Under the pieces are notes generated by a model. It saw only the letters and a program-made list of their open reading frames with translations. It was not told where the DNA came from and ran no database searches. A DNA stretch of 64,000 bases from Penicillus capitatus. Lineage: Eukaryota > Plantae > Chlorophyta. The stretch spans positions 2,156,351 through 2,220,350 of the forward strand of contig OZ287697.1 in the NCBI GenBank assembly GCA_965649825.1. Direction: 5' to 3'. This document shows positions 1 through 64,000 of this stretch, piece by piece (position 1 is the first letter of the stretch; each line of letters opens with the position of its first letter). Position numbers and translations under genes: made by a program.

Positions 1-1529
1 CGAAAAAGACGATCTTTCCGTTCGACGTCTTCCGATACCACAGTCATGAGCAGTTCAAATTGCAGCTGTTCGATTTTTTGGTAAGTGGTGGAGAGGGTGG
101 ACACCAAGGAACGCATGATGTCCTCAGACATCGTCTCATCTTTGCATCCCTTCCACCAGACATTGGGCAACAGCTCCTTCAAATCATCCGTCGTTGGCTG
201 CTTTCGCACCAAACATCTCTCCAACAGTGCAAAAGCTCGATCGGAGGCGAAGAACACTTTTGCTACTACAGGGGAGCGCAGCAGGGCCACAAAGAGACTC
301 AGATAGGGATAGGAGGCAGTATAGGGCAGCTCTGAAGCGCGAAAGGGCATGACAGCACAGCTATCGGCGATGTGCGTCAAGAGGGTCTCTGTTAGAGCAC
401 AGAACTCTATGGGGCCCAATGCATTGGCCAGATGATCCATGAACAGACGCACGGCATGTGTGGACTCCATGCATTTGTCACCCAGCAGTCGTTTCAGACT
501 GGACACAATGCCTTGCTGAATATGAAATGGATTTCTCAAGAGGGGGCGCAAATGCTGAACAATCAAGGCTCCGATCAGGACCCCCTCATCAACGGTGAGC
601 TTTGAACTTCGAAAGACGGGAGACATTGCTGACATGGCATTGGTGGCAGCCATCGTCATTTCGATCAATCTTTCCAGACACTCTGTCAAATACTCCACCA
701 CAGATTGCTCCCCATTGGGCGGCGGCGTCTCGCACGGATGGTATCCGTCGATCGGGAAATAGAACGGCTGCGTTCCAAAGTTGAGTGTACAGCGCTCGTC
801 TTCTGAGAGACTGATGGCGGGAAAGTAGCCCAGCTCGGGTTTGAGGGTACGGATGTCGCGAAAGGCCGTTCCCATGGATTTGCCGTTACGATAGAACACG
901 AGCTCTCCGTCGTCGAAGTCGGCACAGCATCCAATCACATCACCTGGTGCCCACGCCTGTCCATAGTTTGCCGCTTCGACACTCCATTTCTTAATCCTCT
1001 TTCCATCAAAGGCATAGCTGTCTTCACCATCCCCCACACCCTCTTCGCGATTGAACAGACATGAAAGAGTGGCCCATCCGATTTGCTGAATGCCCCCTGT
1101 GCCCAAAACTGCCTCATACATCCAACGTCCCGCATAGAAGCAATGCGTGGCTCTGCAGCTGCTGAAGTTGCCTTTCGATTCGACGCAGAATCGATTTTCT
1201 TCGGATATGACGAGACGACCGAATCTGGAAGCAACGTCGAGTTCGACATGCTCTGGACCAAGACGGCCTTCAGGTGGCAGTGGGGTTTCTTGTGTCGCCA
1301 GCTGAGCCGTGCGTTGCTGAAGAGCCTCCTCGACAGCGCGATAAAGAATGCTGCCTCCTTCGACCAACACGTAGCTGCGGTCGACATTCAGGACGTGACG
1401 CAGGGCGCTGTTGAGTTCTTCGAGTTTGTCGCTGGCGGAAGACGTGGGACGCTCATGCGGATCATCCTGCCTCAGCAAAACGGCGAGGCCTTCGGACTTC
1501 TTTCCTTTTTCACTTGGTTTCAATCCCAT
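1..1529 (-). CDS. RKP: SPRY-domain E3 ubiquitin ligase RKP/KPC1 (RNF123) homolog, 5' part; runs off the window edge
   Basis: Uninterrupted minus-strand frame from ATG 1529 to base 1 (missing from the ORF track because it has no stop). It reads ...GRWMYEAVLGTGGIQQIGWAT...GVGDGEDSYAFDGKRIKKW...YGQAWAPGDVIGCCADFDDGELVFYRNGKSMGTAF...YFPAISLS, the RKP/KPC1 SPRY signature. Confidence 0.9.
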   Translation of the reverse strand, partial: MGLKPSEKGKKSEGLAVLLRQDDPHERPTSSASDKLEELNSALRHVLNVDRSYVLVEGGSILYRAVEEALQQRTAQLATQETPLPPEGRLGPEHVELDVASRFGRLVISEENRFCVESKGNFSSCRATHCFYAGRWMYEAVLGTGGIQQIGWATLSCLFNREEGVGDGEDSYAFDGKRIKKWSVEAANYGQAWAPGDVIGCCADFDDGELVFYRNGKSMGTAFRDIRTLKPELGYFPAISLSEDERCTLNFGTQPFYFPIDGYHPCETPPPNGEQSVVEYLTECLERLIEMTMAATNAMSAMSPVFRSSKLTVDEGVLIGALIVQHLRPLLRNPFHIQQGIVSSLKRLLGDKCMESTHAVRLFMDHLANALGPIEFCALTETLLTHIADSCAVMPFRASELPYTASYPYLSLFVALLRSPVVAKVFFASDRAFALLERCLVRKQPTTDDLKELLPNVWWKGCKDETMSEDIMRSLVSTLSTTYQKIEQLQFELLMTVVSEDVERKDRLF

Positions 1530-1607
1530 TCGAGTGACAGATGACAGACAGTGAGCCAAAGGGCACGCTGAGATGAAGTTTAGACGGTGCGCGCACCGGC
1601 AGTTCGA

Positions 1608-3098
1608 TCATGTACCGTCATCTTCAGAAGATTCTTCCATGTCTTCGCTGCTTGTTTCGCTCTTCTCTTGCGCAGAAGACCTCGGATCTGCAACACAATG
1701 GCGTCTCCTTATCCTTTATGAGTTGTCTAATGACCTGGATTGGTGTCAGAAGCGTCTTGATGGGACGGAAAGATCAAGGGCGCTTTGCCGATGTCTTCCA
1801 GGAAACGGTTCTCGGCCAAGAATCGAATGCACTGCAAGACATAGGACTTATCTCTCCTGATCCATATGATCCAATTCAGAAGATCACACATTGCACGATG
1901 ATCGATCGTACGAACCTGGTATCTCTGTACAGGAGCTTCTCCAGCAGAGACATCGGTTTTCGGGGAATGCCTTGTCGATTAAAGGATCCCTAAAGTAGGG
2001 ATGAATGTATAGATGATGTGTGATCGGGCAAGACGCAACTGGCTCAAGGATTCTTTTGTGCTGAGATGGATCCGTTTCCCATCTCTTGCGCTTTGCATCC
2101 CACCGATGGCGTCGTCCACAGTCCGGTCGATTTCCTCCATAGCGACGATAGAGGCCATCAGTCCCTGCAATGCTGCACGCGACCACACAAAATTGCGTTT
2201 CCTTCTGAAACATATATGGTATGTCCGACGGACCTGGACACGCCCAATTCCTGTTGCTTGGCAAGAATCTCTCGCAGTTCCTTGGCTCTCTCCGAGTTTG
2301 TTTGTTCGTTCTGCACCCACCAAATGAAAACGGCGATCAGAGGCATCACAGATGTCTACCGTGCTGGATGGAAGTTTTGAACGTGGGAAGTTCTTGCGTC
2401 TCTGCTCGATCCATCTGGAACAGACAGAGATCAACAAGATCTCGATCATGCAAGACATGAAGGGGGAGGCACTCTTTCACTTCCTGTCTTTCGGCCTCCG
2501 TCTGGGGTTCGCGCACAGTGACGTGACGCATCTGTTCCATCTCTTGTGCCCGGCGTTCCTGTTCAATCTCCTGTCGAGATCTGTAACGCCGCGACTGCCC
2601 ACGACCTCTTTGAAAATGTCTCCTTCCAGTTCCATGGGCTCTGGACAAACAAAACCCTTCACTTCTGTCATAGAAAACCCAAGAGGTTTACGTTCTGTAA
2701 GAAGGTGTTTCTTGTTTGACAGCCGTCTGCTGAGCAGTAAAGGCGAAGCCCTGCTGAAGGGGGGCATACATGGGAGCCTGTACATTCGGATCGAATCCAG
2801 GCGCCGCCGGCATCGCATAGTTCTGCAGAGGAATTGTCTGAACGGGCTGGAATCCCATGACTCCATAGTTCGGCGCTGTTAGCGGCATTCCGGACAGTCC
2901 TTGGACGCCGGTCCAGATCGCTCCGGTCGGATTCGGCGGAAGCGTCCAGCATGGAGGAAGCCACGCTGCGCTGCTCGTCTGGAGAGGGGCGGCCGACGCT
3001 CCCGATGAGCTCTGTGCGATTCCGGGAATAACCTGCTGGAGACCAGGATGGTAGGGCGGACGGTTCCCTACAGGCGGCGGTGGATCCGACGATGCCAT
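1608..3098 (-). CDS. NUFIP1: NUFIP1/Rsa1-like snoRNP assembly factor (spliced; Pro/Gln-rich N-terminus)
   Basis: Exons encode WIEQRRKNFP (NUFIP1/Rsa1 motif WxxERxKNxP), MSLLEKLLYRD and IRRDKSYVLQCIRFLAENRFL (plant NUFIP C-terminal motif). A final 47-nt intron leads to an acidic tail ending TGA at 1608. Internal boundaries are approximate. Confidence 0.7.
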
Positions 3099-3110
3099 CC
3101 TGTACGACTC

Positions 3111-3471
3111 ATGCAAGAGCGCCTTCTCGGCCGTTTCCTGCTCGTTGCATCGACAGGACTCTTCGCATACTATATCGTCTGGTTGCTGATTACGGTGAAC
3201 AGAACTGCAGATTCTCTCTCGTTACCAAAGCACAAGTGTGCAGCCGTTTGTAGAGGACGGACATTATCTTCTGTCTCTATTCCCCGATCGATTCTACGCT
3301 TTTCGAGTGCCGGTGTTCGTGGGCGTGGTATTTCTGTGCTTTGTGGCTGGAAACGTGGGACTGGTCCTCATCGGTGCGGCATTCAAGGGAGACCGTACAC
3401 CATCCAAGTGTCCCAACATTATCTCACTCTTTTTTAACTCAACGACGGCGTTTTCCAGAAAAGAAAACTAA
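3111..3471 (+). CDS. DPM2: Dolichol-phosphate mannosyltransferase regulatory subunit 2 (about 80 aa, two TM helices)
   Basis: MQERLLGRFLLVASTGLFAYYIVWLLIT, intron 3195-3243, then PFVEDGHYLLSLFPDRFYAFRVPVFVGVVFLCFVAGNVGLVLI. This matches the DPM2 pattern YYxxWxxxxPFV. Stop TAA at 3469-3471. Confidence 0.85.
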
Positions 3472-3477
3472 ACATCC

Positions 3478-5414
3478 ATGGTCGATGCTGCTTCCTATGC
3501 AGGGAACTGGCAGGAACAGATGGATGAGATCATTGCCTTACGTTCGATTTTGGGATCTGATTTCAGGTAACATCTCTCACTCTTTTGCAAGAGTGACATG
3601 AGATGACAGATTGTCGGAATGGGAAGGAGGGCCAAAACTGCAGGAAGACAGCGATTTTACAGAACTCCTCGACTGCAGTGTTCCAGCACAGCCCATCGAC
3701 GTGCACTGTCGAATCACCGTGCGAGTTGAGATGCCCTCAGACGGCATGACGCTCTCTCTCCTCTCGCCCAGCGGCAGTCAATCCAGTACTACAGAAACCG
3801 AAGAGCAGCTCTCTAAGGTCCAGTGTCCGCACGCGACATCTCCTCTGTACGAAGACTCATAGAGCTTAGGTCCTATATGTGCCGCCTCTGTGTCTGACGC
3901 TGGATCTTGTTCCTGGTTATCCATCGGATGCACCGCCCGGATTCCGTCTCTCTGCTTTTTGGCTTTCTCGACAGCAGCTCACGCAGCTGGCCAGGCAGTT
4001 GGATCAGATATGGCAAGAAGCATCTGGTTTTCCTGTGTGCTTCACGTGGATCGACTGGCTGCAGCGATCTCTGCTGTCGACGCTGCATATCGAAACGCAT
4101 TTTCTCATCGATGTGTCACCGCATTCGTGGCAAGAAAACAACGATCCGCGGATAGCGGTGTGTTCGGATGAGATCTCTCCACTGAAGATTATGCAAGACA
4201 TACTCCAACATGACATGATTCGATCGAACGAGGCGTTTCAGAAGAGTGCGTGGTCCTGTCCCGTCTGCATGGAAGAGCAGCCTGGAAAGAATTTTGTCCG
4301 TTTTCACACATGCCGGCATTTCTGCTGCCGCGAGTGTTTCCGGAAGTACTGCTCTGTCAATATCGAGCAAGGACGTGTCGAACTGCGATGCCCTGAGGTC
4401 AAATGCACCACCCCTGTGCCTCCAGAAGTTCTGAAGAAGCACTTGGAGAAGGTGATCTCTCATACAATGCAAGACAGGCAGGATGACGAAGGGTGGCTGG
4501 CACCAGGAAGAGTATGATCGTTGGGAGCAGCTCTTGCTTCAGCGAACGCTCGAAGCGATGTCCGACATCCAATACTGCCCCCGTTGCAGCACGGCATGCA
4601 TCGTGGAGAGCGATCACTTTGCCCAATGTCCAAAGTGCTACTACGCCTTCTGTACGGAATGTCTAGATGCGTGGCATCCCGGCGGGTGCACTCCACTGCT
4701 CAATAGACATCCATCGCATCGTTCTGTGTCACGCAGGGAATGCATTCGGTTGGAAAAGAAGCTGCTAGACGCTGTGGAGAAAGCTGAAGTGGGGGAGACA
4801 CCCAAGCAGGAGCGCCAACGCTATCTGCGGGATCTCAAGAATCAGGTCCTTACCATGCAGTATGTGAAGAAGAACACTCGGGAGTGTCCCAACTGTGGCA
4901 TGGGAATCGAAAAAGACGGAGGATGCAATCACATGTTCTGTACCTATTGCAATATGCATTACTGCTACGTCTGTGGATGCATGAACATCACTTACGATCA
5001 CTTCAGCGCACAAGGATGTGTGCTCTTCGATGAAAGTGTCATTTCTGAATGGGAACGGATGCAAGGGGGTCCACAACAACGACAGGTTTGATCAAAGATC
5101 CGTGCCTTGCTGCTTTGCGATGCGTGAATGCAGGCACAGGCAGAGAGGCGTCCCGAAGAGTGCGTTGTCCTGTATGGAGACCGTGGTTCCTGATGGTGTG
5201 TTGTAGGGGGCCAGACCCATACGACCCAGAGGAACAAGTCTGGGTGTACAAGAGATGCCCAGTTTGCAGCACGTTTCAGCCAAAGACAGATCGGAACAAT
5301 CTCATGCGCTGCTATGTCTGTTCCAATCGATTCTGTTTTCTCTGTCTGGCTGTCTTGCCAAAGAAGAATCCTCAAACACACTTTGGAACAGGACGCTGTC
5401 GCCAACACTCGTAA
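3478..5414 (+). CDS. RWD + RING1-IBR-RING2 (RBR) E3 ubiquitin ligase, RNF14/plant NHL8-like, with an extra C-terminal C6HC-type module
   Basis: Exon 1 QEQMDEIIALRSILGSDF (RWD start); RING1 CPVCMEE...CRHFCCRECF; IBR YCPRC...CPKCYYAFCTECLDAWHPG; RING2 CPNCGMGIEKDGGCNHMFCTYC; last exon CPVC...NNLMRCYVCSNRFCFLC...HFGTGRCRQHS*. Confidence 0.9.
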
Positions 5415-5595: not shown

Positions 5596-7821
5596 ATGGC
5601 TGCTCGGATGTGTCCTGTCTCATTTTTCTGTCTCCGATCATGCTGTCGTACAACAAGGGTGACGACGCAGCATGATGACATTGAGGTTGTGTCGGACGGG
5701 CACCGTCGTTCGTCGCCGTGTTGGCGATCTGTACACGCATCTGTTGCCATTCCTATCGTCATCGCCATGCCTCTCGCCTCAGCGACGACGGCATTGGAGC
5801 GATGAGAAGCGAAGGGAGAGAAGCTATGTGGAAGCTACACAAGCCCGGTGGACGCCTCCGCCGTTGGCGGATAACGAGGAAGTCGCACAGGAGACGCTGA
5901 CGTGTCCGGGATGCGGGATCCGGCTGCAGCGAACGCATCCAAACAGACCGGGGTAATTCCAACTGTACTGCAGCACCTAACATGAGATCTTCTCATCTTT
6001 CCTGCACCGTGCGTGCAGCTACTACCGAGTTCCCAAGACAGAAGCATCAGCTCCTGGCTATACCGTACCATACACTCATGGATGCCACCTCAGTTCTTAG
6101 AGCACGCAGCTTTCAGGAGACGGAAAAAGATTACTGGGGAGAAGAGATAGGGCCGAGGGTTGTGTCAGATCGAGTCTCTCCACAGAACGTCGCTATGTCG
6201 GATGTAATGTCCCTTAAGTCATGGCGTCTATCCAAAGCACATTGCTTGAATTCTGAGCAGGAATCGTCTTCGGAGGATGCGATGAGTGATGAATCTCAAG
6301 AGTACACTTTCGAGGAGGAATCGACACAAGAGGCGGCTGTCGTGTGCGAACGCTGCTTCTCTCTACGCCACTATGGGTTCTTCGGCATTCTGCCAGCTGC
6401 GCCGCATCTCAGCCTTCGCTTTCGCTAGGAGGTTGAAGAACATGGAGGCGGAGGCGCTGGTTCCTCAGTTCAGTGTGGAGAGGATTCTGAAGCCCAAGAT
6501 TGCAAAGACTAAAGGAAAGAAGGTGGTTATCGTCTGCGTTGTCGATGTCTTCGATTTCGACAGTTCTTTGCCTGTGGAAGAACTCAAGTGTGTTCAATCA
6601 TCACCTCATCTACCTCGACTGCACGTGCTATTGATGCAGATCCCTGTTCCCAGCATCCGCCAACCTTCCAGATTTTTTAAATTTTATTCTGGTCGGAAGC
6701 AAGGTGGATCTCATATCGAAGAAAATCTCCAAAAAGACGCTCGAGGTGCAATGCTAGAAGGTGTTAAGGTGATCGGCGAACGGATAGTGTTTAGATCTGG
6801 GTCAGGACCCGATTGAAAGAGGCAAAGCTGCCTTTTGCCAAGAGAGTGCATCTCATCAGCAGCCAGACAATGATGGGCGTAGAGAGGCTGATGATCGATC
6901 TGCGAAGAGAGATCGTGCGCAATACAGACTGTTACATTATCGGCATGCAAAATGCAGGAAAGAGCACCATGCTCAATTCGTTGAGGAGACTGGTTCAGAC
7001 AAACAAAGCCAAAAGTACTGCTGGCGGCGCCAGATGGGAGACAGAGTGGCGTTTTCGTAGATCCTGTCACGACAGCATCTCTCCCAGGAACGACGCTAGG
7101 GTTTGTTGACGTACCGGGCATTCCGGTGCCGAAGACCTGTCGAGTGTTTGATACGCCTGGGCTGCCACAGAATGGACAGATCACAGGGCGGTTGACGATG
7201 GAAGAGGTCTGTCACATCGTCGAGATCATCTACAGCTTCCCATCAGCTTCGTGTGTTCAGCTGAAGCTTGTCCAACCGAGAAAGACCGTGAAACCCCGTA
7301 CCTACAGATTTGGAGCACGCAGCAGTCTTCTGATCGGGGGACTAGTACGTCTGGATGTGATCGATCTGCAGGGTCGCACACTGTACATTACTGTCTGGAT
7401 GTCGGAGGAGCTTCTCTGTTTTCTGGGAAAGAGAGAAGAGATCGAGAGCACACTGGAGAAGCATCGGGGGTCATTACTGAGACCTCCAGTGCGCATGAGT
7501 CCACAACTGCAGAGTGCAGGACCACTCGTCCCACAGAGAGTCACTGTCACAGGCGACTCGTGGAAATCCTCCAGCACAGACGTGTGCATTGCAGGTGATC
7601 GCTGTTGCTGTGATGCCGCCCGTTCTGTTGACCTCTCTTGCTTTCTGACAGGATTGGGTTGGTTGTCTGTCGGTTGTGAAGGGGAGGCACAGTTTGATCT
7701 GTGGACACTGAAGGGTGTTCGGGTGACCACTCGGCCTGCATGGGTTAAAGATTACTCTACGGTTTTCCAGAGATCTGGATTCAGTGATACCGTCAAATCC
7801 CGCGGCGTTCGGAAGCGGTGA
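5596..7821 (+). CDS. BPG2: Circularly permuted YqeH/NOA1-family GTPase, plastid BPG2-like (spliced; start uncertain)
   Basis: Zn finger CPGCG...CERC.SLRHYG; VVDVFDFDSSLP; G1 GMQNAGKST; G3 DTPGL; C-terminal domain GGLVRLDV...WKSSSTDVCIAGLGWLSVG. Confidence 0.82.
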
Positions 7822-21485: not shown

Positions 21486-21754
21486 TCTGAACAACACCGT
21501 CACGAAGCATAGACACCGAAGTCTTGTACCGCCACTCCATCAAACGACGAAACGTGACGTGTAAATGCATTGCGTTGGATCGTGGCATGGGTCGGTCTCG
21601 ACCACAACGCCGGCGACACCATTCTGTCTAGGATGGATGTCTAATGAATGTGATTGTACGCCAGAGGGACGGTACGGCGTTGTCCGTCTGACTTGGCATC
21701 CGTCTTTTGTTTCGCGAGATCTCGTTTCTTGGCTTTTTCTTTCAGTGCTCGAAG

Positions 21755-22507
21755 ATGGCTCAGGTTTCGAGTTTTTTGGGCAAGCCTATTGCCGTGGCTT
21801 TTCCGCAGCCCCATGCAGCTGCGCCACGTCGTATGTTCGTTCGTGCAGAAGCGGATGCCCAATCGACGACGCGTCGAGTCGCTCTTTTGGGCAGCGTCAC
21901 GGCAGCCGGTGCCATTCTTACCCGGGTCGAGTCTTCCTTCGCAGCCTATGGCGAAGCTGCAAAAGTTTTTGGCAAACCAACCGACACATCTGGTTTCATT
22001 CCATTCGTCGGCGAAGGCTTCGCTCTTCTGCTACCGTCAAAATGGAATCCGTCTAAAGAAGCCGAATTTCCCGGAACTGTCCTGCGTTGGGAAGACAATT
22101 CTGACGCCCTTACGCACGTGGTGATTACCAGAACGCCGACAGACAAAACATCGATTGAGCAAGTCGCAACGCCCGAGAAGTTCCTCGAATCCATCAGCTA
22201 CTACATTGGAAAACAAGTATTCAAGGGAGAGACAGCTTCCGAAGGCGGCTTTGCTAAAGATAAGGTCTCCACGGCGAGTCTTCTGGACCAAGATACCGTC
22301 AAGGACAAGAATGGACGTTCCTATTACAAATACAATTTGTTGGTTCGTGCTGCTGATGGCAATGAAGGCGGACGTCATGTGTTGCTGACGGCGACGGTGG
22401 GAAGCGGCAGCATTTTTGTGGCCAAGATTCAGTGTGGAGATAAGAGATGGTTCAAAGGTGCCGATAAACAAGCACTGAAAGTGAGCGATTCGTTTACCGT
22501 TGCTTGA
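21755..22507 (+). CDS. psbP: Photosystem II oxygen-evolving enhancer protein 2 (23 kDa)
   Basis: Bipartite transit peptide with twin Arg (TRRVALLG) and cleavage site SFA|AYGEAAKVFG; FALLLPSKWNPSKEAEFPG; GETASEGGF; RAADGNEGGRH; GDKRWFKG. Confidence 0.96.
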   Translation: MAQVSSFLGKPIAVAFPQPHAAAPRRMFVRAEADAQSTTRRVALLGSVTAAGAILTRVESSFAAYGEAAKVFGKPTDTSGFIPFVGEGFALLLPSKWNPSKEAEFPGTVLRWEDNSDALTHVVITRTPTDKTSIEQVATPEKFLESISYYIGKQVFKGETASEGGFAKDKVSTASLLDQDTVKDKNGRSYYKYNLLVRAADGNEGGRHVLLTATVGSGSIFVAKIQCGDKRWFKGADKQALKVSDSFTVA

Positions 22508-50910: not shown

Positions 50911-53187
50911 TTACTTCTTTGTCAAGTGCATTTTACGAATCCTCACCGATTTGGGTGTCACTTCCACAAGTTCATCCGGTTTGATGAATTCCAGGGACTC
51001 ATCCAATGTCAGGTCCATGACTTTATCGAGCACGACTGTTGCCTCTTTCAGCGAAGTACGTATATTCGTTAGATGCTTCTTCTTGCAGATGTTAATTCGG
51101 AGATCCGAGTCTCTGTTGTGCACGCCCACGACTTGACCTTCGTAGACTTCATCTCCAGGCTTCACAATGAATGTCCCCCGGCTCTGGAAGTTTTCCAGTG
51201 CATAGGCCGTAGCTGTGCCAGTTTCGTGAGCCGTCAGCGAACCGTTCTCGCGAATGGGCAGTTCTCCACATTCCGGTTCAAATCCCGAAAAGATCGTGTG
51301 CAGAATGGCGGTGCCTTTGGTAACGGTCAGCAGATGATTTCTCAAACCCAGGAGTCCACGCGTTGGCATCTTATACTTTAGGACATTAAGAGATCCAATG
51401 CCGGGTGCCATGTCCAGCATCGTGCCTCTTCGTTTACCCATGAGTTCCACCACGACGCCCACGTAGTCTGCAGCCACCTCCACCATCGCCTCCTCAAATG
51501 GCTCACACTTCACACCTTCAATCTCTTTCGTGATCACCTTCAGTTTCACATATCGGAAGAGGTCAGAGAAGCGGGAACCCTACTGTCATCGGCCCGACAG
51601 CGAACTCGTATCCTTCGCGGCGCATCGTTTCGATCAGGATTCCCAGATGCAATCCACCACGACCGCTGACGGTAAAGACGTCTACTGTTGGACCTAGGGA
51701 CGTCGCATTTGTCAAGGACACCCCTGTGACGTGGTGCTTAGGACACCTGGCTTGACTCTGAGAGCCAGATTGCGTTCAAGTTCACGTTCCAGTCGATCTT
51801 TGAGGTTGCGCGATGTCACGTACTTTCCTTCCTTTCCAGCAAAGGGACTGGTATTTACCATAAAGGACATCGTTACGGTCGGCTCCTCCACGTGAATCGT
51901 TCCCAGAGGAATTGGCTGCGATCGATCCGAAATAGTCTCGCCGATTCGAATGTCTCCGATCCCAGCAACGGCGCAGATATCCCCTGCCTCCACCGATTCC
52001 ACACTGACTTGGCGGAAATTGTTATAAACAAAGAGCTCAGACACCTTCGCCGATCGCACCTCTTCAACACCTTCTCGGCAGACACTCACGGCATCTGCCT
52101 TTTTGAGAGCACCCGCCGAGATGCGGCCAATAGCAATGCGACCTTTGTGTTCTTGAAAATCGATGTTGGTCACCAACATCTGCAGCGGCGCATTCTTCTT
52201 CACCGTTGGAGCCGCAATCTACACCAACGCTCCTCACTAACCCCCTTATACCTTTCTACCAAAAGTGTGACCTCGGAGACGATGGACTGAAAGAGAGGCT
52301 CCAGTGTTTCTTTCAGTTCTTCGGGTTTATCTCCAGCGATGCCTTGTATTCCGGAGGCATAGATAATGGGGAAGTTGCACTGCTCGTCTGTCGCTCCCAG
52401 TTCCAGAAAGAGATCAAAGGTGGCATCGACAACAAACTCCGGCCGAGCAATGTCTCGATCGATTTTGTTGACCACCAAGATCACACGTTTCTGCAGCTCC
52501 AGTGCTTTTCGCAGCACGAAGCGGGTTTGAGGCATCGGTCCCTCAACGGAATCCACCAAAAGCAACACACCATCACACATATTGAGCACCCGTTCCACCT
52601 CGCCTCCAAAATCGGCGTGGCCCGGTGTGTCAATGATGTTGATCTTGATGTCGCCATATGTAATGGCCGTGTTTTTGGAAAAAATCGTGATGCCACGTTC
52701 ACGTTCCAGATCAAAGGAATCCATAATGCGCTCGTCCACTGCTTGGTTAGCACGAAAAACACGGGACTGACGCAACATAGCATCCACCAGTGTTGTCTTT
52801 CCATGGTCAACGTGCGCAATGATGGCGATATTGCGAATATCGTCACGTGTGCTCGTGTCTCCGCTGTCCGTCTCGGTCGTCCCTGCGGAAAGACAACCCC
52901 TGTCACGAGGCCGCCTTTACATAGTGCGTACCTACGATCCAACGTCGCCGTGTGACAGTACCTCAGAACGTCACGAGAGAGTACTAAAGGTGAGAGCTCT
53001 CGTCGTAGAAGGCATCTCCCTGTCACGGACAGATCGCTGCCACGATAGACAGACGCTCTTGAGGACTTCGTGTCGTACGATGAGAGGGAAGTGTGAGGTT
53101 GTGTGATGGAACGTGAGTAAGAGGATATCGCAGGACGCTGTGGCGCAGGACACCGATGAACGAACGAACCTTCAGTAGCGACGCCAT
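50911..53187 (-). CDS. typA: TypA/BipA translational GTPase, plastid SVR3-like
   Basis: [19 protein letters not shown]; ERERGITI; [16 protein letters not shown]; NKID; VEEPTV...[16 protein letters not shown]; CEPFE; KKHLTNIR; [11 protein letters not shown]. Confidence 0.95.
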
Positions 53188-53230: not shown

Positions 53231-54969
53231 ATGTCGACGTCCAAAGGCGACGCCGTTTTGGCCGACCTCAAAACGCTGGAGGTTATTCATACATACCACA
53301 GCAGATTGGACGCTGTATGTTCGTTTGTTCTGTTGCTCGCAGAGCCGGTTGGTAGAAATGGATGTGGCCAGTTTTCAACAGAATCTTAACAAGGTGTGTC
53401 AAAAGGCCATTGGCTGTCGAGAGGCTGACGATTCTGTGTATGAGGTTTCGAATGGGATCAAGGACATTTCTGACAAGCTCTCAGCCGCTTTGGTGACAGC
53501 AGAATCGGAGAACGCGCACAACGAATCCAAAAAGGTCACTCTTTGTGTACGAAGAGTGACAACGGTTAACTTCATTGTCTAGAGGGAACGCATCGAACAA
53601 ATGAGCGAAGAAGTGGTCGATTCCAATCCTTACAGTCGTCTCATGGCCCTTCAAAAGATGGGCATCGTACAAAACTATGAACAGATCCGATCCAAGACGG
53701 TCCACGTTTGTGTCCACCTTCGTAACTGGAAGGCGAGATCCTTCAGGTAGCTATTGTGGGCATCGGTGGTGTTGGAAGTGTAGCAGCCGAGATGTTGGTG
53801 CGTTGTGGCGTCGGTGCTCTGTTTCTCTACGATTACGACAAAGTGGAGCTGGCCAATATGAATCGACTGTTCTTCCGACCCGATCAATGCGGCATGACCA
53901 AAACAGACGCAGCTGCCGAGACACTCTGTATCGGTGGCCTCCCCAATCATGCCACTTAGAAACGCTCTTCTGTACCATAGATGATATTAATCCGGACGTG
54001 GAGATTCATTCCTTCACGATGAACATCACGACGGTTGAGGGATTTGATGCATTCAAGTCATCGATCGCGGAACCTCGGGGTCTCGGAAAAGTGGATTTGA
54101 TCTTGAGTTGTGTGGATAACTATGAGGCGCGGATGACCATCAATCAGGTCTGTCTTGAGCTGGACCAGGTCTGGATGGAGAGTGGTGTCTCGGAAGATGC
54201 CGTTTCCGGACACATTCAGCTCATCATTCCTGGACAAACTGCCTGTTATCAGTGTGTTCCCCCTCTTGTCGTCGCCTCGGGTATCGACGAATCGACCCTC
54301 AAACGAGAAGGCGTCTGTGCCGCTTCGCTGCCAACAACAATGGGTGATGTTGACATGACGGCCCGCAAGGGACGAAAGGTGATGCGCTTAGGTATTGTGG
54401 CGGGTCTGTTGGTTCAGAACAGTCTCAAATATCTGCTCAGTTTCGGATCGGTGACGCCATTCTTAGGATACAATGCAATGAAGGACTTCTTTCCATCGCA
54501 TGCTGTTATGCCAAACAACGAATGCACCAATGGACTGTGCAAGAATCTGCAGAATGAGCGTAAAGTACTGCCGTCGATTCAGGCAAAGACGTCATTGCAC
54601 ATGTTTACTCATGGTAGGGCAAGCCATTGTTCTATGGCGGTGCTCCGGAGGACGAGAAAGAAGAGGAGACAGAAGTGATGCACGAAGACAATGAATGGGG
54701 CATCGAAATTGTCAAACAGGAGACACAAGAAGAGACGCCAGAAGAGACAGATGTGACTCTTCCAGATGGCATTGAATACTCTGCACCTATCGTATGCATT
54801 CTCTACAGTCAAGCGACAACTGTCGTTTTGCTTTACTCTGTAGGTCCAGGAAACATCGACAGCCGAAAAAGAGGAAAAAGAAACAGATGTGAAAGAGAAG
54901 GTGCCTGAAGCATCAGTAGAAGATTTGATGGATCAGCTGAATGCGCTCAACAAGGAGACGACGGAGTGA
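53231..54969 (+). CDS. UBA5: UFM1-activating enzyme E1
   Basis: [23 protein letters not shown]; [13 protein letters not shown]; [15 protein letters not shown]; [10 protein letters not shown]; [14 protein letters not shown]; catalytic [12 protein letters not shown]; C-terminal [12 protein letters not shown]. Confidence 0.95.
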
Positions 54970-55050: not shown

Positions 55051-57238
55051 TTACCATTGTTTTGACAAATCTGGTCGAAGTCTGGGTTTGCAGATGAGCT
55101 GCGGTCCGTTGGGGATCATCACAAACCTTGCCACGAATGCCAACGCCATCAACGAAAGGACAGCTCGATAAAAACTGCTGCTGCAGGATTGGCCGCCAAT
55201 GACACCGCACACCACTCCTTCACACAACTGAAGCAAAACTCACTGAATTCTTCTGTCATGTGTCTTTACCTTTACGAATGCATAAAGGAGTAGTGTGAGG
55301 ACGGCGTAGATAAGGAGATCGGGAGATCGTTGGAGATCTGCGCTTATTTTATCGCGACCAATGACAAAGGCTCCAGAGATCAGATCCAAGGCGTCTTGTT
55401 TTCTGCCGTCCTCAAAGTTGTTGAGGTAGTAACGTGTAACACTCTTGATACCGTCGTCGATCAGTCCCCCTACGGAACGCTTTCCTGTGCGAGTGAAACC
55501 ACTCTTTAGCGCTCCCGTTCCACTATATTGAAGGGAGATTTCGTCTCCGTGATCTGCCCAGATCACTTTGAACTGGGCCTCGACCTGCACAAACACAAAG
55601 CTATGGACGACATGACAGGAGATGGTGCTGTATCTGACATGAGGGAAAGATGCTGGCAGAGATGCTTGGACCTCAAGTAGATGCGCTTTCTTGAGAAAGG
55701 CCTCCAAGGCATAACGGCCAAACACAGTTTGCACGACGTTGGTGCGATCAAGGCAATCGACACAATTGGTGCGAACGATGCCGTTTTGAACAGATGTTGC
55801 CCGACCCTCCTCCTGTCATGCACTTGTGTTCGCACACGAAATCGGGCGAGGATAGAGAGAGATACGATAACGAACTGGCCAAAGCGATCCAGATCTGCTC
55901 GGATTCTGTCGAATAGGATGGAGATACGATGATATCGAGTCGTTCCACATTCTTTATGGAAATCAAAATTGATGAGACGGAAGCCGTCTTTCGTCCTTGA
56001 GAAACGCCGAGTGGCATTGTCGAATGCACTTGTCAAGGAACCCTCAGATCCAGTGGCGTGTGCCAAATTCACCGCAACGCATTCCTATCCAACAACATCT
56101 CTGCATCCCATCCCCCACGACACAGGCCTTGCTCACTGTGTACGTACGGAGAAGGTCATTGACGTGAACATCGAAGGCATGTGTGTAGTCAATCTCTCTC
56201 CCGAGACGCGTGGGTGGTTTGTACTTGACGTTCGGAATGCTTGTCCAAAACACGGGGATCGATCCTCGTAGCTGAACGAACGAACACATATGTCCATTCG
56301 ACAGACACAGAAGCTGTTCTGTCTCGACAAAATTTGCCACAGATCCCTGACATCAACATATACAGGTTCGTAAGGCGTAGACGCGAAGAAGCACTTGGAG
56401 ATCGGCGCCCCTTCTCCAGTTGCGTGTGCCCAGGCGTTTCACTGAACGACGTGCCACAATGGTCAACTTCCCGGCTACTCGGTGCGAAAATTCTAAATCT
56501 GTCAGCTCCTGTACGAAGCCTTGAATGACAGGTAACACAAATCCATGTGCTCTCAGCTCTACATCGCCGACATCTGGACATTCTCTCGGAAAAGGATGTG
56601 CATTACGTGTGACGGGTTCCATCAGATGACGATTCCAGAAGAAACGGGTGTCTTCCAGTTCCCATGACCCTTCTCCTCTTTCATTGCTGACGGCCGCCTG
56701 TCGCTCAGTCGTCAGCGTCAGTCGGATTCCGCTGCTGAAGTACAGTCCTCTTCCGGCTTGTTTGGGATCCACTGCCGATTTCACCAATTCAATATAGCTA
56801 CACACGGGCTCGCACAAATCACGCGTTTATACATCTATGCACGCACTTGGCATCTTCTGATGATAAACGTCCCCTGGGAAGATGCAGTTCTGTCTGAACG
56901 ACTCGGTAAACTGGAGAACCATGCACCGTCGCGACCTGCAGAACCAAGGCTGTCGCTGTCCGGTCTGCGTGAGCAAATGAGTGCACTTGTTTTGCTTCCT
57001 TGATAGTGACGAGGACCGTTGCTTTGGCAAGGCGCAGCATTCCCAGAAGTCCAGGGAACACGATGCAGTTACGAAGGAAACGCGGCTGCGTCGACGTTTC
57101 GGCCGTGCCGGTTCGGAGGTCGATCTTCAGCGTCTCGACATATTCCCCTGTCGAATGGAAAGGCTGGAGGTCGACGACGTCGCCTGTTCTCTTGAGGGCG
57201 ACGCCAATGAAGGGGTTCGTTATTGCGGTTTCAGTCAT
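55051..57238 (-). CDS. SAC1: SAC1-type phosphoinositide phosphatase with two C-terminal TM helices
   Basis: DTRFFWNRHL; FVLPVIQGFV; ARRSVKRLGTR; ANFVETEQ; FVQLRGSIPVFW; WADHGDEISLQYSGTGALKSGFTRTGKR; RYYLNNFEDGRKQDALDL. Confidence 0.92.
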
Positions 57239-58072
57239 GGCGCTTCTTCGCGTCTTCGAGTCCCCAAACAACACCTGTGGTCTCGCGTGCCGCAGCGTCG
57301 AGCTGTGCTGTCGAAGGTGTTGGCGGCGAAACTGGTCGTCGGTGCTTGACGTAAAGGGTCCAGTACATATACACGCCGAGAGAGATTCCGAGCGCGGCCT
57401 ACAGAAAGAAGTGTCTGCTGGGGTGTGGGAAACGGTCGTCGACTGCAAACCTGAAGGCGAAATTGACGAAACGCTGGTTGCAAAGATGGCATTTACAATG
57501 ATGGCAAAGTGACCATGCGACGAATCCTAGACTCTGGACGGGACGGATGTGACATTGTAGAAGACGGTGGACACTGAGAAGCATTGTCTTTGTGGTCTTT
57601 CATCTTGAGTTTGCATGTCTCGCTAAAAACTGTCCCGCGTTCACTAGAGAAGCCGATTGAGTATGGCAGACGGGAACGCTGACTGGTAATACATCTAAAG
57701 GCCAAATGACGCACGGTAAGGGGTTGTCCACGTAAAGCAATTCGAGGCGCAATGACCTCCGACTTTTCCGTTTTAGTGTTTCGGTGCGGAATGTGCTCGA
57801 AAGAGACATCATGGCAGTCGTGACGCATCTGCTGTGGCGAGTTCTGACAGTTGTCGCCCGTTCCAGTGACAGCGACAATCACAGACGGGCAGATGACGAG
57901 CCATTTTCGTTACCTAGGCGAACAACGCAGTCGCTGTCTTCTGATCGTGACATCCGCTGAAATAACAGGCCGCGGCGAAACCGTAAGTGCTACTATTTGC
58001 GGCGAGCCTCTGCTTCTTCGTTCGTTCGTTCGTTTATTGGGTTTTCTCTTTGTCGACGAGGACTCATACACG

Positions 58073-58820
58073 ATGTCTTTGAAGTTGGCCATCCTCGCCA
58101 CGCTCATGTGCTGCGCCTTCGAGGTGAACGCCCTGACATTCGCTTACTCTTATAATACGACGCATTCCTTAATGTTCTGAACAGGCAAGCGCCTATGAGA
58201 TCGATGAAAGTAAGCGACATGTTCCATCTTTTGTCGAGACTCCATTGTCTGTTGGGGACATAGAACCGACGACAGACCAGACAGGCAGCAGGTTTCGCCG
58301 CTATCCTTGTAAGATGTCTTTCTTGCCGATACGTCTTTCTGAGAGCCGTTTCTTGTTGGCAGATGCACCGCCGACCAATCTCTATAGCGGCAAGCAGACC
58401 AGAGGAGACCACTCTTCTAACGCCTTCGTGTTGTAGAGAAAGCCGCAGGCGCCGCAGTGGACACAACAGACAGCATGCCACGCAACATCCCAGGTAAGGG
58501 ACGTGTCATTACGTATGCTTAATTCTGAGAGCCGTTTCTTGTCGGCAGATGCACCGCCGACCGATCTCCGTATTGCCAAACACAGCAGAAATGGTCAATC
58601 TCCTAATGCCGTTCTGTGTTGCAGATCAAGGTCATGATATCGGGCAGTGGACCGGAGAGATTTCTTCGGAGCATGCCAGTCATCCGTCTGCAGCGCATTG
58701 TATGAAGCTCTGCCGCGAAGGATACGGTGAGTCATTCTCTCCTTTTTCTAATCGAACCCGCAACTTTCAGGATGCATGCCGTGTAAGAAGTACTATGGCC
58801 GACTGTTGCGTTTTGTCTGA
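58073..58820 (+). CDS. Orphan secreted prepropeptide, 125 aa, 8 exons
   Basis: Exons 58073-58123, 58185-58209, 58264-58308, 58363-58389, 58437-58493, 58549-58569, 58625-58726 and 58771-58820 splice in frame. Product: MSLKLAILATLMCCAFEASAYEIDEKPTTDQTGSRFRRYPYAPPTNLYSEKAAGAAVDTTDSMPRNIPDAPPTDLHQGHDIGQWTGEISSEHASHPSAAHCMKLCREGYGCMPCKKYYGRLLRFV. Introns are 44-61 nt; intron 4 is GC-AG. Confidence 0.65.
58337..58568 (+). repeat. 46-bp direct repeat (58337-58382 and 58523-58568) covering an intron 3' end plus a micro-exon
   Basis: TTCTGAGAGCCGTTTCTTGT(T/C)GGCAG|ATGCACCGCCGACC(A/G)ATCTC, with two mismatches between the copies. Confidence 0.9.
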
Positions 58821-59689
58821 CCACTCCTAAGGATTCCCAGATTGGTAACAAATTTACCTTTCGTTGCATAAAGCATCCGTCTAGTGGTTGTTGTTCAAGG
58901 TGCGCATTTTTTCTGTTTCGCGCTAGATTGTTCTGATGAGTTGTCAAACATTCTCGACGTTGTCGTCTCATGAGCTGAATTTAAGAGAACATGTTGGCTA
59001 CACTATTAGACTCCATTTGGCAGGACATTACTATGGATCTAACCACCTGCATATCGCACAGAGACAGGTAATGGATAGACTCTATAGAAACAGATTTCGC
59101 ATTCTTGCGTCTTGAAGAGATCGATAAAGTGCATTTTAATTGACCTCTGCACGTCATACTGCGCTCTTTCGTGAGTGTAAACCACTTGTGTGCAGAAGGG
59201 AATATGATGTAACGTCATTCCTTTCGTTGAATGCCTAAGAAACCTTGTGGTTTATTCATAACAAACAGTCGCTTGTGGTTTGTCGTTCGGAAGATATCGC
59301 AATTAATGGTGGTAGTGGTTCGAGGACGAAACCAGTTTTCAACGCTGCACGCTGCAAGATGGAGAGTCTTTTCACCGTACAGAATAATTCGTTCGACAGG
59401 TGAACGTAAGTTCGGGCCAAGTGTCCAGATAGAAGCCACCACACAGTCCAGGGAATGTCTGGCCTCATTTTCCAATAACCTGAGTCTTTCGCAGGTGCGA
59501 TGTTCTTACGCACGTTTATCGCGAGGCGCGGAGACGTAGTTACGAACACCACCACACTATCATGACTCAACATCTTCACACAAAGTTGACAAGTTGAGAT
59601 GGAACTTTATGAGGAGCCCATCGAGTTAAAACAGCGAAACAACAAGCCTGGCATACGAACGACAGACAGGCCACAAATAAACTGCAGTT

Positions 59690-60977
59690 TCAGGGACGCA
59701 ACAATGATTGAAGATCAGCCTTGATGCTTTCGTCACAGAAGGTAGATGCGTTACATATGACATCATACGGAGTGTCGCCACCGTCGCTCTCGATAGTCTT
59801 TGATGCGCCCCTGTTAAGCAGAAGCTGTGGAGAGATGATCACCACGAGACTCTGAATTGATCTGCGGCAAACCTTTACGGCGTCGACATATCCTGCTGAT
59901 GCCGCCATGTACAGCGGAGTTCTTCCATAATTGCCCTGTTTGTTGACATCTGCACCTCCATGAAGCAAGAACTGCAGAGACGGTACATCTACCTCACTAG
60001 ACTTTGAACAAACTTGCGACGTACCACGATCATCTTCACGCGTCCTAGTTCGGCGGCAGCAAAAAGCGGAGTTCTTAACGCATTGTCAGCCGCTTCGGTA
60101 TCTGCACCTCCAAAGAGTAGATTCTGTGGAGGAGGTATTCTCCGAGACACTCCAAACAGATCTGCGACAAACCTCTGCGGTTTTTACGCGTCCATGTACT
60201 GCTGCCTCATAAAGTGGCGTTCTTCCGTAAAAGTCGGGCTTGTCAACACTAGCACCTGCGTTAAGCAAGATCTTTGGAGACGCTATGTCAACAGCAGACT
60301 TTAGACAAATATGCGACACACCTTTACGACTAGTTCACTTCCATTTCTCGCTGCCTTGTAAAGCGCCGTTTCGTCTGCTCTGTCAATCGCGTCGATCTGC
60401 GCACCCCAATTAAGAAGGACCTGCGGAGATGATGATGCGACAACAGGGATCTTAAGGGAAATGACGTGATGGTTCACCTTCGCGGTACGTGGACGACCAC
60501 AGGCTGCTGCATAGTGCAGCGGAGTCCTTTTCGCGTCATCTTTTGCTTCGACGTCCGCACCTTGTCGGAGCAGAATCTGCACAGGCGGTCATCCTCGCAA
60601 ACCATTCGCACATCGGGACATACTTTCGCAGTTTCCGCCTGTCCCCTCACTGCCGCGACATGAAGTGGCGTCGGTATCGCGTTTTCTTTGTCAAAGTCTG
60701 CGTCCCATTTATGCAAAAACTGCAGCCTCAAGCTTTATGATGTTCGGATCTTGGGATAGCGTGATCCCTACTTGATCATCCCCGTAGTTTCTTTTGGCGG
60801 CTGAGCCGTGCGAGGAAGTGTCTTCAACTCTGCTTTCCGCTAACCACTCGGCCCCTTTGTGAAGCACAACGTTTGACGGCGTAAACAAGATGTTCCATCC
60901 GAAACACTTCTGCTGCAGAGTGTCGCACGGGGGACGAGAAGAACGCAGAGCCACGCGTACAGCACGGCATTCTTCAT
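59690..60977 (-). CDS. Ankyrin repeat protein with a predicted signal peptide; one repeat per exon
   Basis: MKNAVLYAWLCVLLVP|RAEW...; then exons PTPLHVAAVRG, RTPLHYAAACG, ETALYKAARNG, RTPLYEAAVHG, RTPLFAAAELG, RTPLYMAASAG and DTPYDV, each ending at the same phase-0 position. Confidence 0.8.
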
Positions 60978-62829: not shown

Positions 62830-63991
62830 TCACGCTGGGAAGCTTCTTCCCAGTTCTTTGTTGATGGCCTCTCGCATCTCGGTGTAACTGTCATAGCCAG
62901 TGACCGGCTTAAGCATTGTGTTCCACACTTGATCCATCATTTGGTGTGCTTCTGCCGAGAACACTTCCCTTGACTCGTTCGGTTTTCCTTTCCTGACCTT
63001 CCCGGGATTCTTGCTCTTGTCCAGACCAGCATCTCTCTTCAGTCCAGCAGCCTCGTTTCTGGCGAGCTTGAACAGGTGCGAGTCAAACTTAGAGTCGTGC
63101 TTCTTCATGAAGTCAAAACTCGCCTAAGAATCGCAGACCAAATCATTCCAGGTGCGTAATTCTATACATCCAAACCTGTCGCTCAACCAGATCAAGCAGA
63201 TCAGGGTCTCCGACACCCAAATTGGTGAAATCTGACAAAAGCTTGATGCATTTCTTGAGATCTGCTTTCAGGTCTTCGTAGTGCAGCCACAAAACATTCT
63301 CGTCCTTTCTGTGAGGATACCACCCGGCTAGAAGAAAGGCGCCCTCAGAATGGATTGACTTGCGAGAACATCCTTGCCTAAGTGTCGCATTTGATCGGCG
63401 TTGAAATCAAGGATATCTGATTTCGGGTTGTCGTATACAAAGAACCATTCGATAAACTCGTTCAGCGTAAGATCTTCTGGCTCAAAGACCCAATGCATGA
63501 AGTAGTGATAAAAGGACAGCGCGGCGTCCTTGGGGTTCCTGTCACAATGGCCTTCGGTGAGTTAGTTTATTACGTGCCGCTTTTCGAACCTGGTCACCAC
63601 GACGCATTTCTCGGCAGATGGACAGTGCTCTGCCGCTGCATGCGTCTTGTAAATGCGCGGTTCGAATGAACGTGCGTTACAGTCGCCGGCACCACCCAAT
63701 GCGGAAAATTCCAGGAAAGGAATCGCTTCATTAATATCGTCGTAGTCCATACTGCCACCCGTCCGCAGTCCATGGAGAATCTGGCAGCTATGCGTCGATT
63801 CATCTCGAGAAATCTGGCGACTCTACCTGTTGAACCCACGTTGTTCCGGATTTGGAGCCGACGGCGAGAAGAATATCTCCATCTCGGAGTTTGACATCTA
63901 GTCCTTGGCGCACTTTATCAGTAGGAACGAGTTTCTTTATCCGCGCAAAAATCTCATCGACTTTCGACGGTACGCTGAACGCCTCGTCCAT
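62830..63991 (-). CDS. Sulfotransferase family 1, paralog B (the true start may lie beyond the window)
   Basis: GDILLAVGSKSGTTWVQQ|ILHGLRTGGSMDYDDINEAIPFLE...IYKTH...VVVTR|NPKDAALSFYHF...VLWLHYEDLKADL...|FMKKHDSKFDSH...KVRKG. Confidence 0.88.
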
Positions 63992-64000
63992 CTTTTTTGC

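Follow-up and report, generated by a model that had tools for sequence, protein, structure and literature searches.

Positions 58073–58820 (plus strand) raise the question of whether a gene can be divided so finely that it leaves no long open reading frame (ORF) and, if so, what such a gene would encode. The window, a 64,000-nt stretch of Penicillus capitatus DNA, has a GC content of about 50% and short introns. Its genes include PsbP (PF01789), TypA/BipA, a UBA5-like ThiF gene, a SAC-domain phosphatase, an ankyrin gene and Sulfotransfer_1. The PsbP gene (21707–22507, plus strand) encodes a presequence in which a transit peptide comes before a twin-arginine lumenal signal, and no signal peptide leads it. 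On this basis, the organism was taken to be a green-lineage alga with a primary plastid. TypA of the window finds its nearest match, with 94% identity, in an ENA metagenome assembly and its best named match, with 54% identity, in Botryococcus. The locus occupies a 2.2-kb gap between the minus-strand SAC-domain phosphatase gene and the minus-strand ankyrin gene, and the gene density elsewhere in the window is about one per 3 kb. On the sequence features described below, we consider it fairly probable that the locus is a real, lineage-restricted and intron-dense plus-strand gene for a small secreted protein.

The gene model was rebuilt base by base, and the 125-residue frame from eight exons that had been claimed in an earlier note was reproduced exactly, with the use of one GC donor (intron 4) that goes unmentioned in that note. 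The exons are joined into a 378-nt coding sequence (CDS) that begins with the ATG at position 58073, ends with the TGA stop at positions 58818–58820 and is translated into MSLKLAILATLMCCAFEASAYEIDEKPTTDQTGSRFRRYPYAPPTNLYSEKAAGAAVDTTDSMPRNIPDAPPTDLHQGHDIGQWTGEISSEHASHPSAAHCMKLCREGYGCMPCKKYYGRLLRFV. Introns 1–7 are 61, 54, 54, 47, 55, 55 and 44 nt long. Six of the seven introns are of the GT-AG type, and the remaining one (58390–58436) is of the GC-AG type with the donor GCAAGC. Exons 3–7 (45, 27, 57, 21 and 102 nt) are each a multiple of 3 in length and each of phase 1-1. Exons of 21–27 nt are undocumented elsewhere in the window.

Exon 1 (58073–58123) carries the ATG, with A at position −3, and encodes MSLKLAILATLMCCAFE, which would form the n- and h-regions of a signal peptide. 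Intron 1 (58124–58184; gtgaac...aacag) contains a read-through stop at 58178–58180, and its gtgaac donor is also used in the adjacent ankyrin gene. The 25-nt exon 2 (58185–58209) contributes ASA-YEIDE with the signal c-region and the predicted cleavage site, and it is followed by intron 2 (58210–58263; gtaagc...catag). Exon 3 (58264–58308) encodes KPTTDQTGSRFRRYP and carries the R-x-R-R motif. Intron 3 (58309–58362; gtaaga...ggcag) precedes exon 4 (58363–58389), which encodes YAPPTNLYS with the first APPTxL motif. Intron 4 (58390–58436; gcaagc...ctaac...tag) is the weakest link of the model. Exon 5 (58437–58493; EKAAGAAVDTTDSMPRNIP) repeats the first part of exon 7 in diverged form. After intron 5 (58494–58548; gtaagg...ggcag), exon 6 (58549–58569) encodes DAPPTDL with the second APPTxL motif. 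Intron 6 (58570–58624; gtattg...ctaat...tgcag) leads to exon 7 (58625–58726), which encodes HQGHDIGQWTGEISSEHASHPSAAHCMKLCREGY(G), an acidic, His-rich stretch together with the first two Cys residues. Intron 7 (58727–58770; gtgagt...ctaat...tttcag) separates exon 7 from exon 8 (58771–58820), which provides (G)CMPCKKYYGRLLRFV, the basic tail with the last two Cys residues, and the TGA stop. All of the motifs named in the earlier note are thus present: the signal-like start ending in ASA, GSRFRR, the two APPT(N/D)L motifs and the basic four-Cys C-terminus. Introns 2 and 3 have lengths divisible by 3 and contain no in-frame stop, so the ORF needs the removal of introns 1, 4, 5, 6 and 7 only, and splicing at intron 2 is not proven by the ORF alone.

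The two APPT(N/D)L motifs derive from a diverged internal tandem duplication with a period of 186 nt (58309–58680, plus strand; copy 1, 58309–58494; copy 2, 58494–58680). Copy 1 comprises intron 3, exon 4, intron 4 and exon 5, and copy 2 comprises intron 5, exon 6, intron 6 and the start of exon 7. A 46-nt core (58337–58382 versus 58523–58568) is 96% identical between the copies, and the remainder is about 55–67% identical. The core consists of the last 26 nt of the intron, with a branch-like CTGAG and the acceptor, and the first 20 nt of the exon. Introns 4 and 6 are about 67% identical, and exon 5 and the first part of exon 7 are about 55% identical; both alignments beat shuffled controls, and the score of the exon 5–exon 7 alignment is exceeded by only 0.2% of shuffles. 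Both copies retain a branch motif (CTAAC or CTAAT) and an acceptor. Intron 4 is the paralogue of intron 6, and the old GT donor has become AT in copy 1, where a GCAAG donor lies 6 nt 3' of the lost GT and preserves the frame. GCAAG is the usual form of GC donors.

The pattern of the duplication, with a retained core and a drifted remainder, fits a history in which splicing and coding were kept up; a possible alternative cause of the 96% identity is gene conversion, acting locally on the 46-nt core. The gene would have grown when a two-exon unit was long ago duplicated in tandem and in frame, and such growth in frame is possible because the internal exons from exon 3 onwards are of phase 1-1.

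The claim that the product is an orphan held in all of the collections searched. When the 125-residue model was compared with 5.8 billion proteins, a single match was obtained (P0001), which is an unspliced, prokaryote-style ORF call from the same locus of a related metagenomic alga; exon 7 is the only piece of the model with this database relative. No protein from a spliced transcript of the locus is found among the 5.8 billion proteins, and the best TypA match in the collection, at 94%, comes from another assembly; the alga of the window thus appears to be missing from that collection. A Pfam scan of the product returned no family at E ≤ 1, a PDB sequence search returned no match at E ≤ 10, and JGI metagenomes gave no match when scanned by protein and by a conserved 22-mer. 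Paralogues of the locus were also looked for within the window, and none was found.

Three related copies of the locus are found in the ENA assembly ERZ25074695 (L001, 9930–10641; L002, 3775–4486; and, inverted, L002, 13944–13234). As observed by alignment and blastn, all three lack a 192-nt segment (57941–58132, plus strand) that covers the 5' UTR, exon 1 and the first 9 nt of intron 1 and is bordered at both ends by a 4-nt CTGA microhomology. A transposon origin of this segment was rejected, as no other copy of it occurs in the window or the fetched loci. All three copies also lack one 186-nt duplication unit and have the exon 6 acceptor changed from CAG to CGG. In two of the three, the exon 3 acceptor is changed from TAG to TGG, and exon 7 contains a 4-nt frameshifting insertion. 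The donor and acceptor of intron 7 are kept in every copy. Relative to the best copy, the window shows roughly 8 non-synonymous and 3 synonymous changes, as counted from the alignment.

The copies are homologous to the window only over positions 55537–59022, and their surrounding genes differ from those of the window. Identity is flat at ∼92% with no exon–intron contrast, whereas a true orthologous comparison between the window and L003 gives about 93% identity in exons and 55–75% in introns. In the copied block, the SAC gene has lost 1 nt within the region of the conserved SFVQLRGSIPVFW motif and gained 4 nt in exon 1. Given the SAC frameshifts, the uniform identity and the foreign neighbourhood, we read the copied block as a pseudogenised segmental duplicate that evolves neutrally. 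Because the copies decay neutrally, they neither support nor refute the eight-exon model; these three decayed copies do not show purifying selection, and the missing exon 1 and lost acceptors do not count against a gene, since the block itself appears pseudogenised. The duplication units of the window differ from each other by far more than 8%, which dates the duplication to before the split from the related copies; these probably lost one unit by recombination across the 46-nt core.

No intact orthologue of the locus was found among the loci examined (L001–L004). By synteny, L003 (TypA-UBA5-SAC; ERZ26696514) loses homology at window position 56145, inside the SAC gene, L004 ends too early to cover the position of the locus, and the ankyrin ORF, used as a handle for a syntenic orthologue, gave no match. 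Before this abrupt break, L003 is syntenic with the window at 85–88% identity; beyond it (positions 1–4755), L003 carries ORFs unrelated to the window together with a retroelement-like ORF for gag/aspartic protease. In the UBA5-like gene, the part that encodes the acidic C-terminus (window 54725–54962) matches L003 positions 6163–6603 three times in tandem at a spacing of about 215 nt, which we read as an expansion of this repeat in the L003 genome. In ERZ25074695, the SAC gene and the locus are duplicated together (L001, 7516–10641; L002, 1360–4486 and, inverted, 14292–13234). The inverted pair in L002 is about 10 kb apart and flanks TGT and RING-finger genes.

A spliced ORF of this kind could arise in DNA that contains no protein-coding gene, such as intergenic or promoter DNA or a non-coding transcript, through the free choice of GT...AG pairs. 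This explanation, which we hold to be somewhat unlikely, was weighed with a Viterbi algorithm that finds the highest-scoring spliced ORF from ATG to stop (introns of 40–65 nt; GT or GC donors); the codon log-odds used for the score were derived from about 5000 codons in the window's confident ORFs. In dinucleotide shuffles of the region, the best models average 8.5 exons and 316 nt of CDS; multi-exon ORFs are thus also given by shuffled sequence, and the spliced ORF alone is no more than expected by chance. The locus scores 20.6 bits versus 11.9 ± 3.1 bits for the shuffles, and none of 100 shuffles reaches its score, but the codon score is also reached by ∼12% of natural antisense windows, some of which exceed the locus. 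As a test, the codon-only gene finder was set aside for having too little power: the true ankyrin gene scores below the candidate and the candidate below some antisense windows. The in-frame codon log-odds of the candidate (0.11 bit/codon) is within the values of real genes of the window (0.04–0.24), and codon content is weak support for coding. The absence of a genuine homologue, Pfam family or PDB match in the searches and the damage in every related copy also speak for a locus devoid of coding function.

The permissiveness of local splice sites points the same way. Twenty local introns were curated; six of them, from the ankyrin gene, were curated by hand, and the remainder come from TypA, UBA5, IPMDH and Hop. 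For TypA and UBA5, the junctions were verified by comparison with the orthologous locus L003. The curated introns (e.g. 52210–52268, 53940–53990 and 60590–60640) are uniform in length (43–57 nt), and their 5' splice sites have almost no consensus past GT (e.g. GTCACA, GTCCAC and GTTTGT), which suggests that the introns of this alga are defined by their length and other signals and not by U1-type pairing. With donors so nearly empty of information, almost any GT...AG of 43–61 nt is allowed, and a splice-site weight matrix from the neighbouring genes was dropped. The donors of the candidate are more canonical than those of its neighbours, with A at +4 in 6 of 7 introns versus 6 of the 20 curated introns, a difference that could stem from the choice of sites in the earlier note.

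Against the absence of a gene stand four signals that coincide on one strand of 750 nt: T contrast, GTAAG density, symmetric exons and a signal-like ATG. T content is 28.8% in the curated introns and 23.5% in exons; in the candidate, the introns, whose lengths of 44–61 nt are close to the local ones, contain 31.6% T and the exons 20.1%, an enrichment in the same direction as in local introns but stronger. The exon-minus-intron T difference of the model (−0.115) is attained by 0.7% of shuffle models, and that of the unbiased best model (−0.143) is the most extreme among 378 natural 900-nt windows on both strands. GTAAG occurs four times on the plus strand of the locus versus 0.39 expected, which is the densest cluster in the 64 kb on either strand, and branch-like CTAAC/CTAAT motifs lie 15–25 nt 5' of the acceptors in introns 4, 6 and 7. 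Five of the six internal exons in the model are divisible by 3, a symmetry found in 1.1% of shuffle models. The crude rule for a signal-peptide-like start is met by only 8 of the 1531 ATG-ORFs of the window (0.5%). Moreover, identity between the duplicated halves has stayed at 96% over acceptor, branch site and exon but has fallen elsewhere, and a gene-free gap of 2.2 kb would be long at the gene density of this window. TGTAA was also considered as a poly(A) signal and rejected, as it is not consistently present 3' of known stops. The composition, splice-motif and phase statistics are independent of the choices made in the earlier note, and they favour a real intron-dense plus-strand gene as the most likely reading.

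A real plus-strand spliced transcript could also yield a different product, with introns 2 and 3 retained, with termination in intron 4 or with a start at ATG 57893; we regard such an outcome as unlikely. Retention is compatible with the open frame of introns 2 and 3, but their GTAAG donors and T-rich composition argue for splicing. The codon-only Viterbi search favours slightly different junctions from those of the eight-exon model. The GC donor of intron 4 is the sole non-GT site, and a transcript that leaves it unused would encode a protein of ∼70 residues that lacks the Cys tail; its GCAAG sequence, the form established for GC donors, argues against such disuse. At the 5' end, the ORF 57851–58180 is open upstream of ATG 58073 and contains the in-frame ATG 57893, which would place 34–60 extra residues before the hydrophobic segment. 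If transcription begins further upstream, a start at 57893 could bury the signal segment, which would become an internal anchor. The bases at position −3, A for ATG 58073 and C for ATG 57893, favour the downstream start. A possible 5' UTR intron of 78 nt (57983–58060, plus strand) was read speculatively from the sequence by its GTAAGT donor, a long pyrimidine/(TTCG)n tract and an AG at 58059–58060. This AG lies 12 nt before ATG 58073, and the putative intron is longer than local introns (43–57 nt). The two ATGs share a frame with or without its removal, and the perfect GTAAGT at 57983 adds to the GTAAG cluster.

Under the eight-exon model, the 125-residue product would enter the endoplasmic reticulum through an N-terminal signal peptide that is cut after ASA (residue 20). 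The N-terminal segment MSLKLAILATLMCCAFEASA passes the crude n-, h- and c-region rule for signal peptides, in agreement with the earlier proposal of a signal peptide, with the caveat of the in-frame ATG 57893; the start of the ankyrin gene is also among the eight that pass. Plastid targeting through an "ASA-F/Y" motif was rejected because the PsbP presequence of this alga is of the primary-plastid type without a signal peptide and because the residues after ASA are acidic. The secreted mature protein is predicted to have about 105 residues. Its N-terminus would be short and acidic and end in RFRR, and its middle part would be acidic and rich in Pro, Thr and Asp, with a net charge of about −6. 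The C-terminal tail, HCMKLCREGYGCMPCKKYYGRLLRFV, is predicted to be cationic, with a net charge of about +5. The four Cys residues of the mature part, spaced C-x3-C-x6-C-x2-C, probably pair as two disulfides.

The RFRR motif (residues 35–38) fits the furin minimal motif and precedes the first Cys by 61 residues; the four-Cys segment starts at residue 100, and no basic cleavage site stands directly before it. The four-Cys peptide would thus not be released by cleavage at RFRR. A Golgi furin/kexin-like subtilase may conceivably cut after RFRR (residue 38), and this cleavage would generate an 87-residue C-terminal product rather than a 26-residue Cys peptide. Furin/PC-like subtilases and secreted precursors with such sites exist in green algae, and of the 771 predicted secreted proteins of Chlamydomonas, 224 (29%) carry an RX(K/R)R site (PMC6313938). 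The motif is so common in algal secreted proteins that it carries little weight. The proposed prepropeptide of a hormone, defensin or toxin had been drawn from layout alone, and it is not borne out by a common motif at such a distance from the Cys residues. From the charge layout alone, an extracellular role (antimicrobial, adhesive or signalling) is a guess.

Two neighbouring genes had been linked to the candidate. The ankyrin neighbour had been described as a signal-peptide protein, and its first ATG (60977) does open a signal-peptide-like segment, which is an unusual start for an ankyrin-repeat protein. In this gene (59690–60700, minus strand), the 33-residue repeats are encoded one per exon, in exons of 99 nt, and the introns are of phase 0 and 47–57 nt long. 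The sulfotransferase is real (PF00685; E = 5e-22), but it is not directly adjacent to the locus, as had been stated, since the ankyrin gene lies between them. The Sulfotransfer_1 gene (62830–64000, minus strand) has five exons and runs off the end of the window, with its N-terminus outside. The enzyme contains a PSB-loop (GSKSGTT) and an RNPKD motif and is of the small-molecule type, not a member of the tyrosylprotein-sulfotransferase family. The product contains no DY motif, and its Tyr residues are found in YEIDE, YPYAPP and LYSE. The suggested sulfation link is undermined by the missing DY motif, the enzyme type and the intervening ankyrin gene, and sulfation of the product by the neighbouring sulfotransferase is only a guess.

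If the gene is real, it exemplifies the very short genes, split into micro-exons of 21–57 nt and with no long ORF, that standard annotation overlooks in intron-dense algal genomes; even where RNA data are lacking, such genes can then be recognised by the contrast in exon/intron composition and by the density of splice motifs. The catalogue of small secreted algal proteins is poor, and green-lineage peptide signalling outside land plants is known mainly from Chlamydomonas. The importance of the locus is modest, as it is one candidate orphan gene whose functional clue is the charge layout only. A far-reaching interpretation, which we consider improbable, would make the locus the founding member of a new green-algal peptide type. 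In such a peptide, an anionic APPTxL (hydroxyproline-type) propiece would mask a cationic two-disulfide C-terminal peptide that is released extracellularly as an antimicrobial or a cell–cell signal, and the gene would diversify by symmetric micro-exon duplication.

Among known systems, candidate prepropeptides and furin/PC-like subtilases have been described in Chlamydomonas reinhardtii (Luxmi et al. 2018, PMC6313938; 2019, PMC6919629). Like these prepropeptides, the candidate would be a secreted precursor of the green lineage in which a signal peptide is combined with an RX(K/R)R motif. It differs from them by the absence of sequence similarity, of a Gly-(K/R) amidation site at the cleavage point and of repeated peptide units bounded by basic sites. 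The overall layout is also similar to that of RALF (PF05498), a precursor of ∼120 residues with a signal peptide, a pro-region, an RR-containing cleavage motif and a basic four-Cys C-terminus. RALFs are land-plant peptides. Membership in RALF was rejected: the candidate has no Pfam match at E ≤ 1 and no YISY motif, its C-x3-C-x6-C-x2-C spacing differs from the two well-separated Cys pairs of RALF, and its RFRR lies 61 residues before the first Cys. Defensin-like (CS-alpha-beta) peptides contain six to eight Cys residues, and the candidate, with four Cys only, no Pfam family and no PDB match at E ≤ 10, was not assigned to them. A tyrosine-sulfated (PSK/PSY/RGF-like) peptide was likewise dismissed on the lack of a DY motif and on a neighbouring enzyme that belongs to PF00685 and is not a TPST.

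Alpha-hairpinin-type plant peptides contain C-x3-C...C-x3-C, and other four-Cys antimicrobial peptides have anionic propieces. The candidate is like them in its C-x3-C motif and in the cationic four-Cys segment that follows an anionic region. In contrast, its second motif is C-x2-C, its loop has 6 residues, no homology is observed, and its acidic part and Cys tail are not divided by a cleavage site. The spacing C-x3-C-x6-C-x2-C is not known from any of the peptide families compared, a comparison that is not exhaustive. On the features of its predicted sequence, the locus is best placed, as a candidate, among the orphan small secreted cysteine-containing proteins. This loose class is descriptive and does not constitute a family, and membership in it is silent on function. 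With the orphan small secreted proteins of fungi, oomycetes and algae, the candidate shares short length, a predicted signal peptide, few Cys residues, a lack of homologues, fast evolution and internal duplication.
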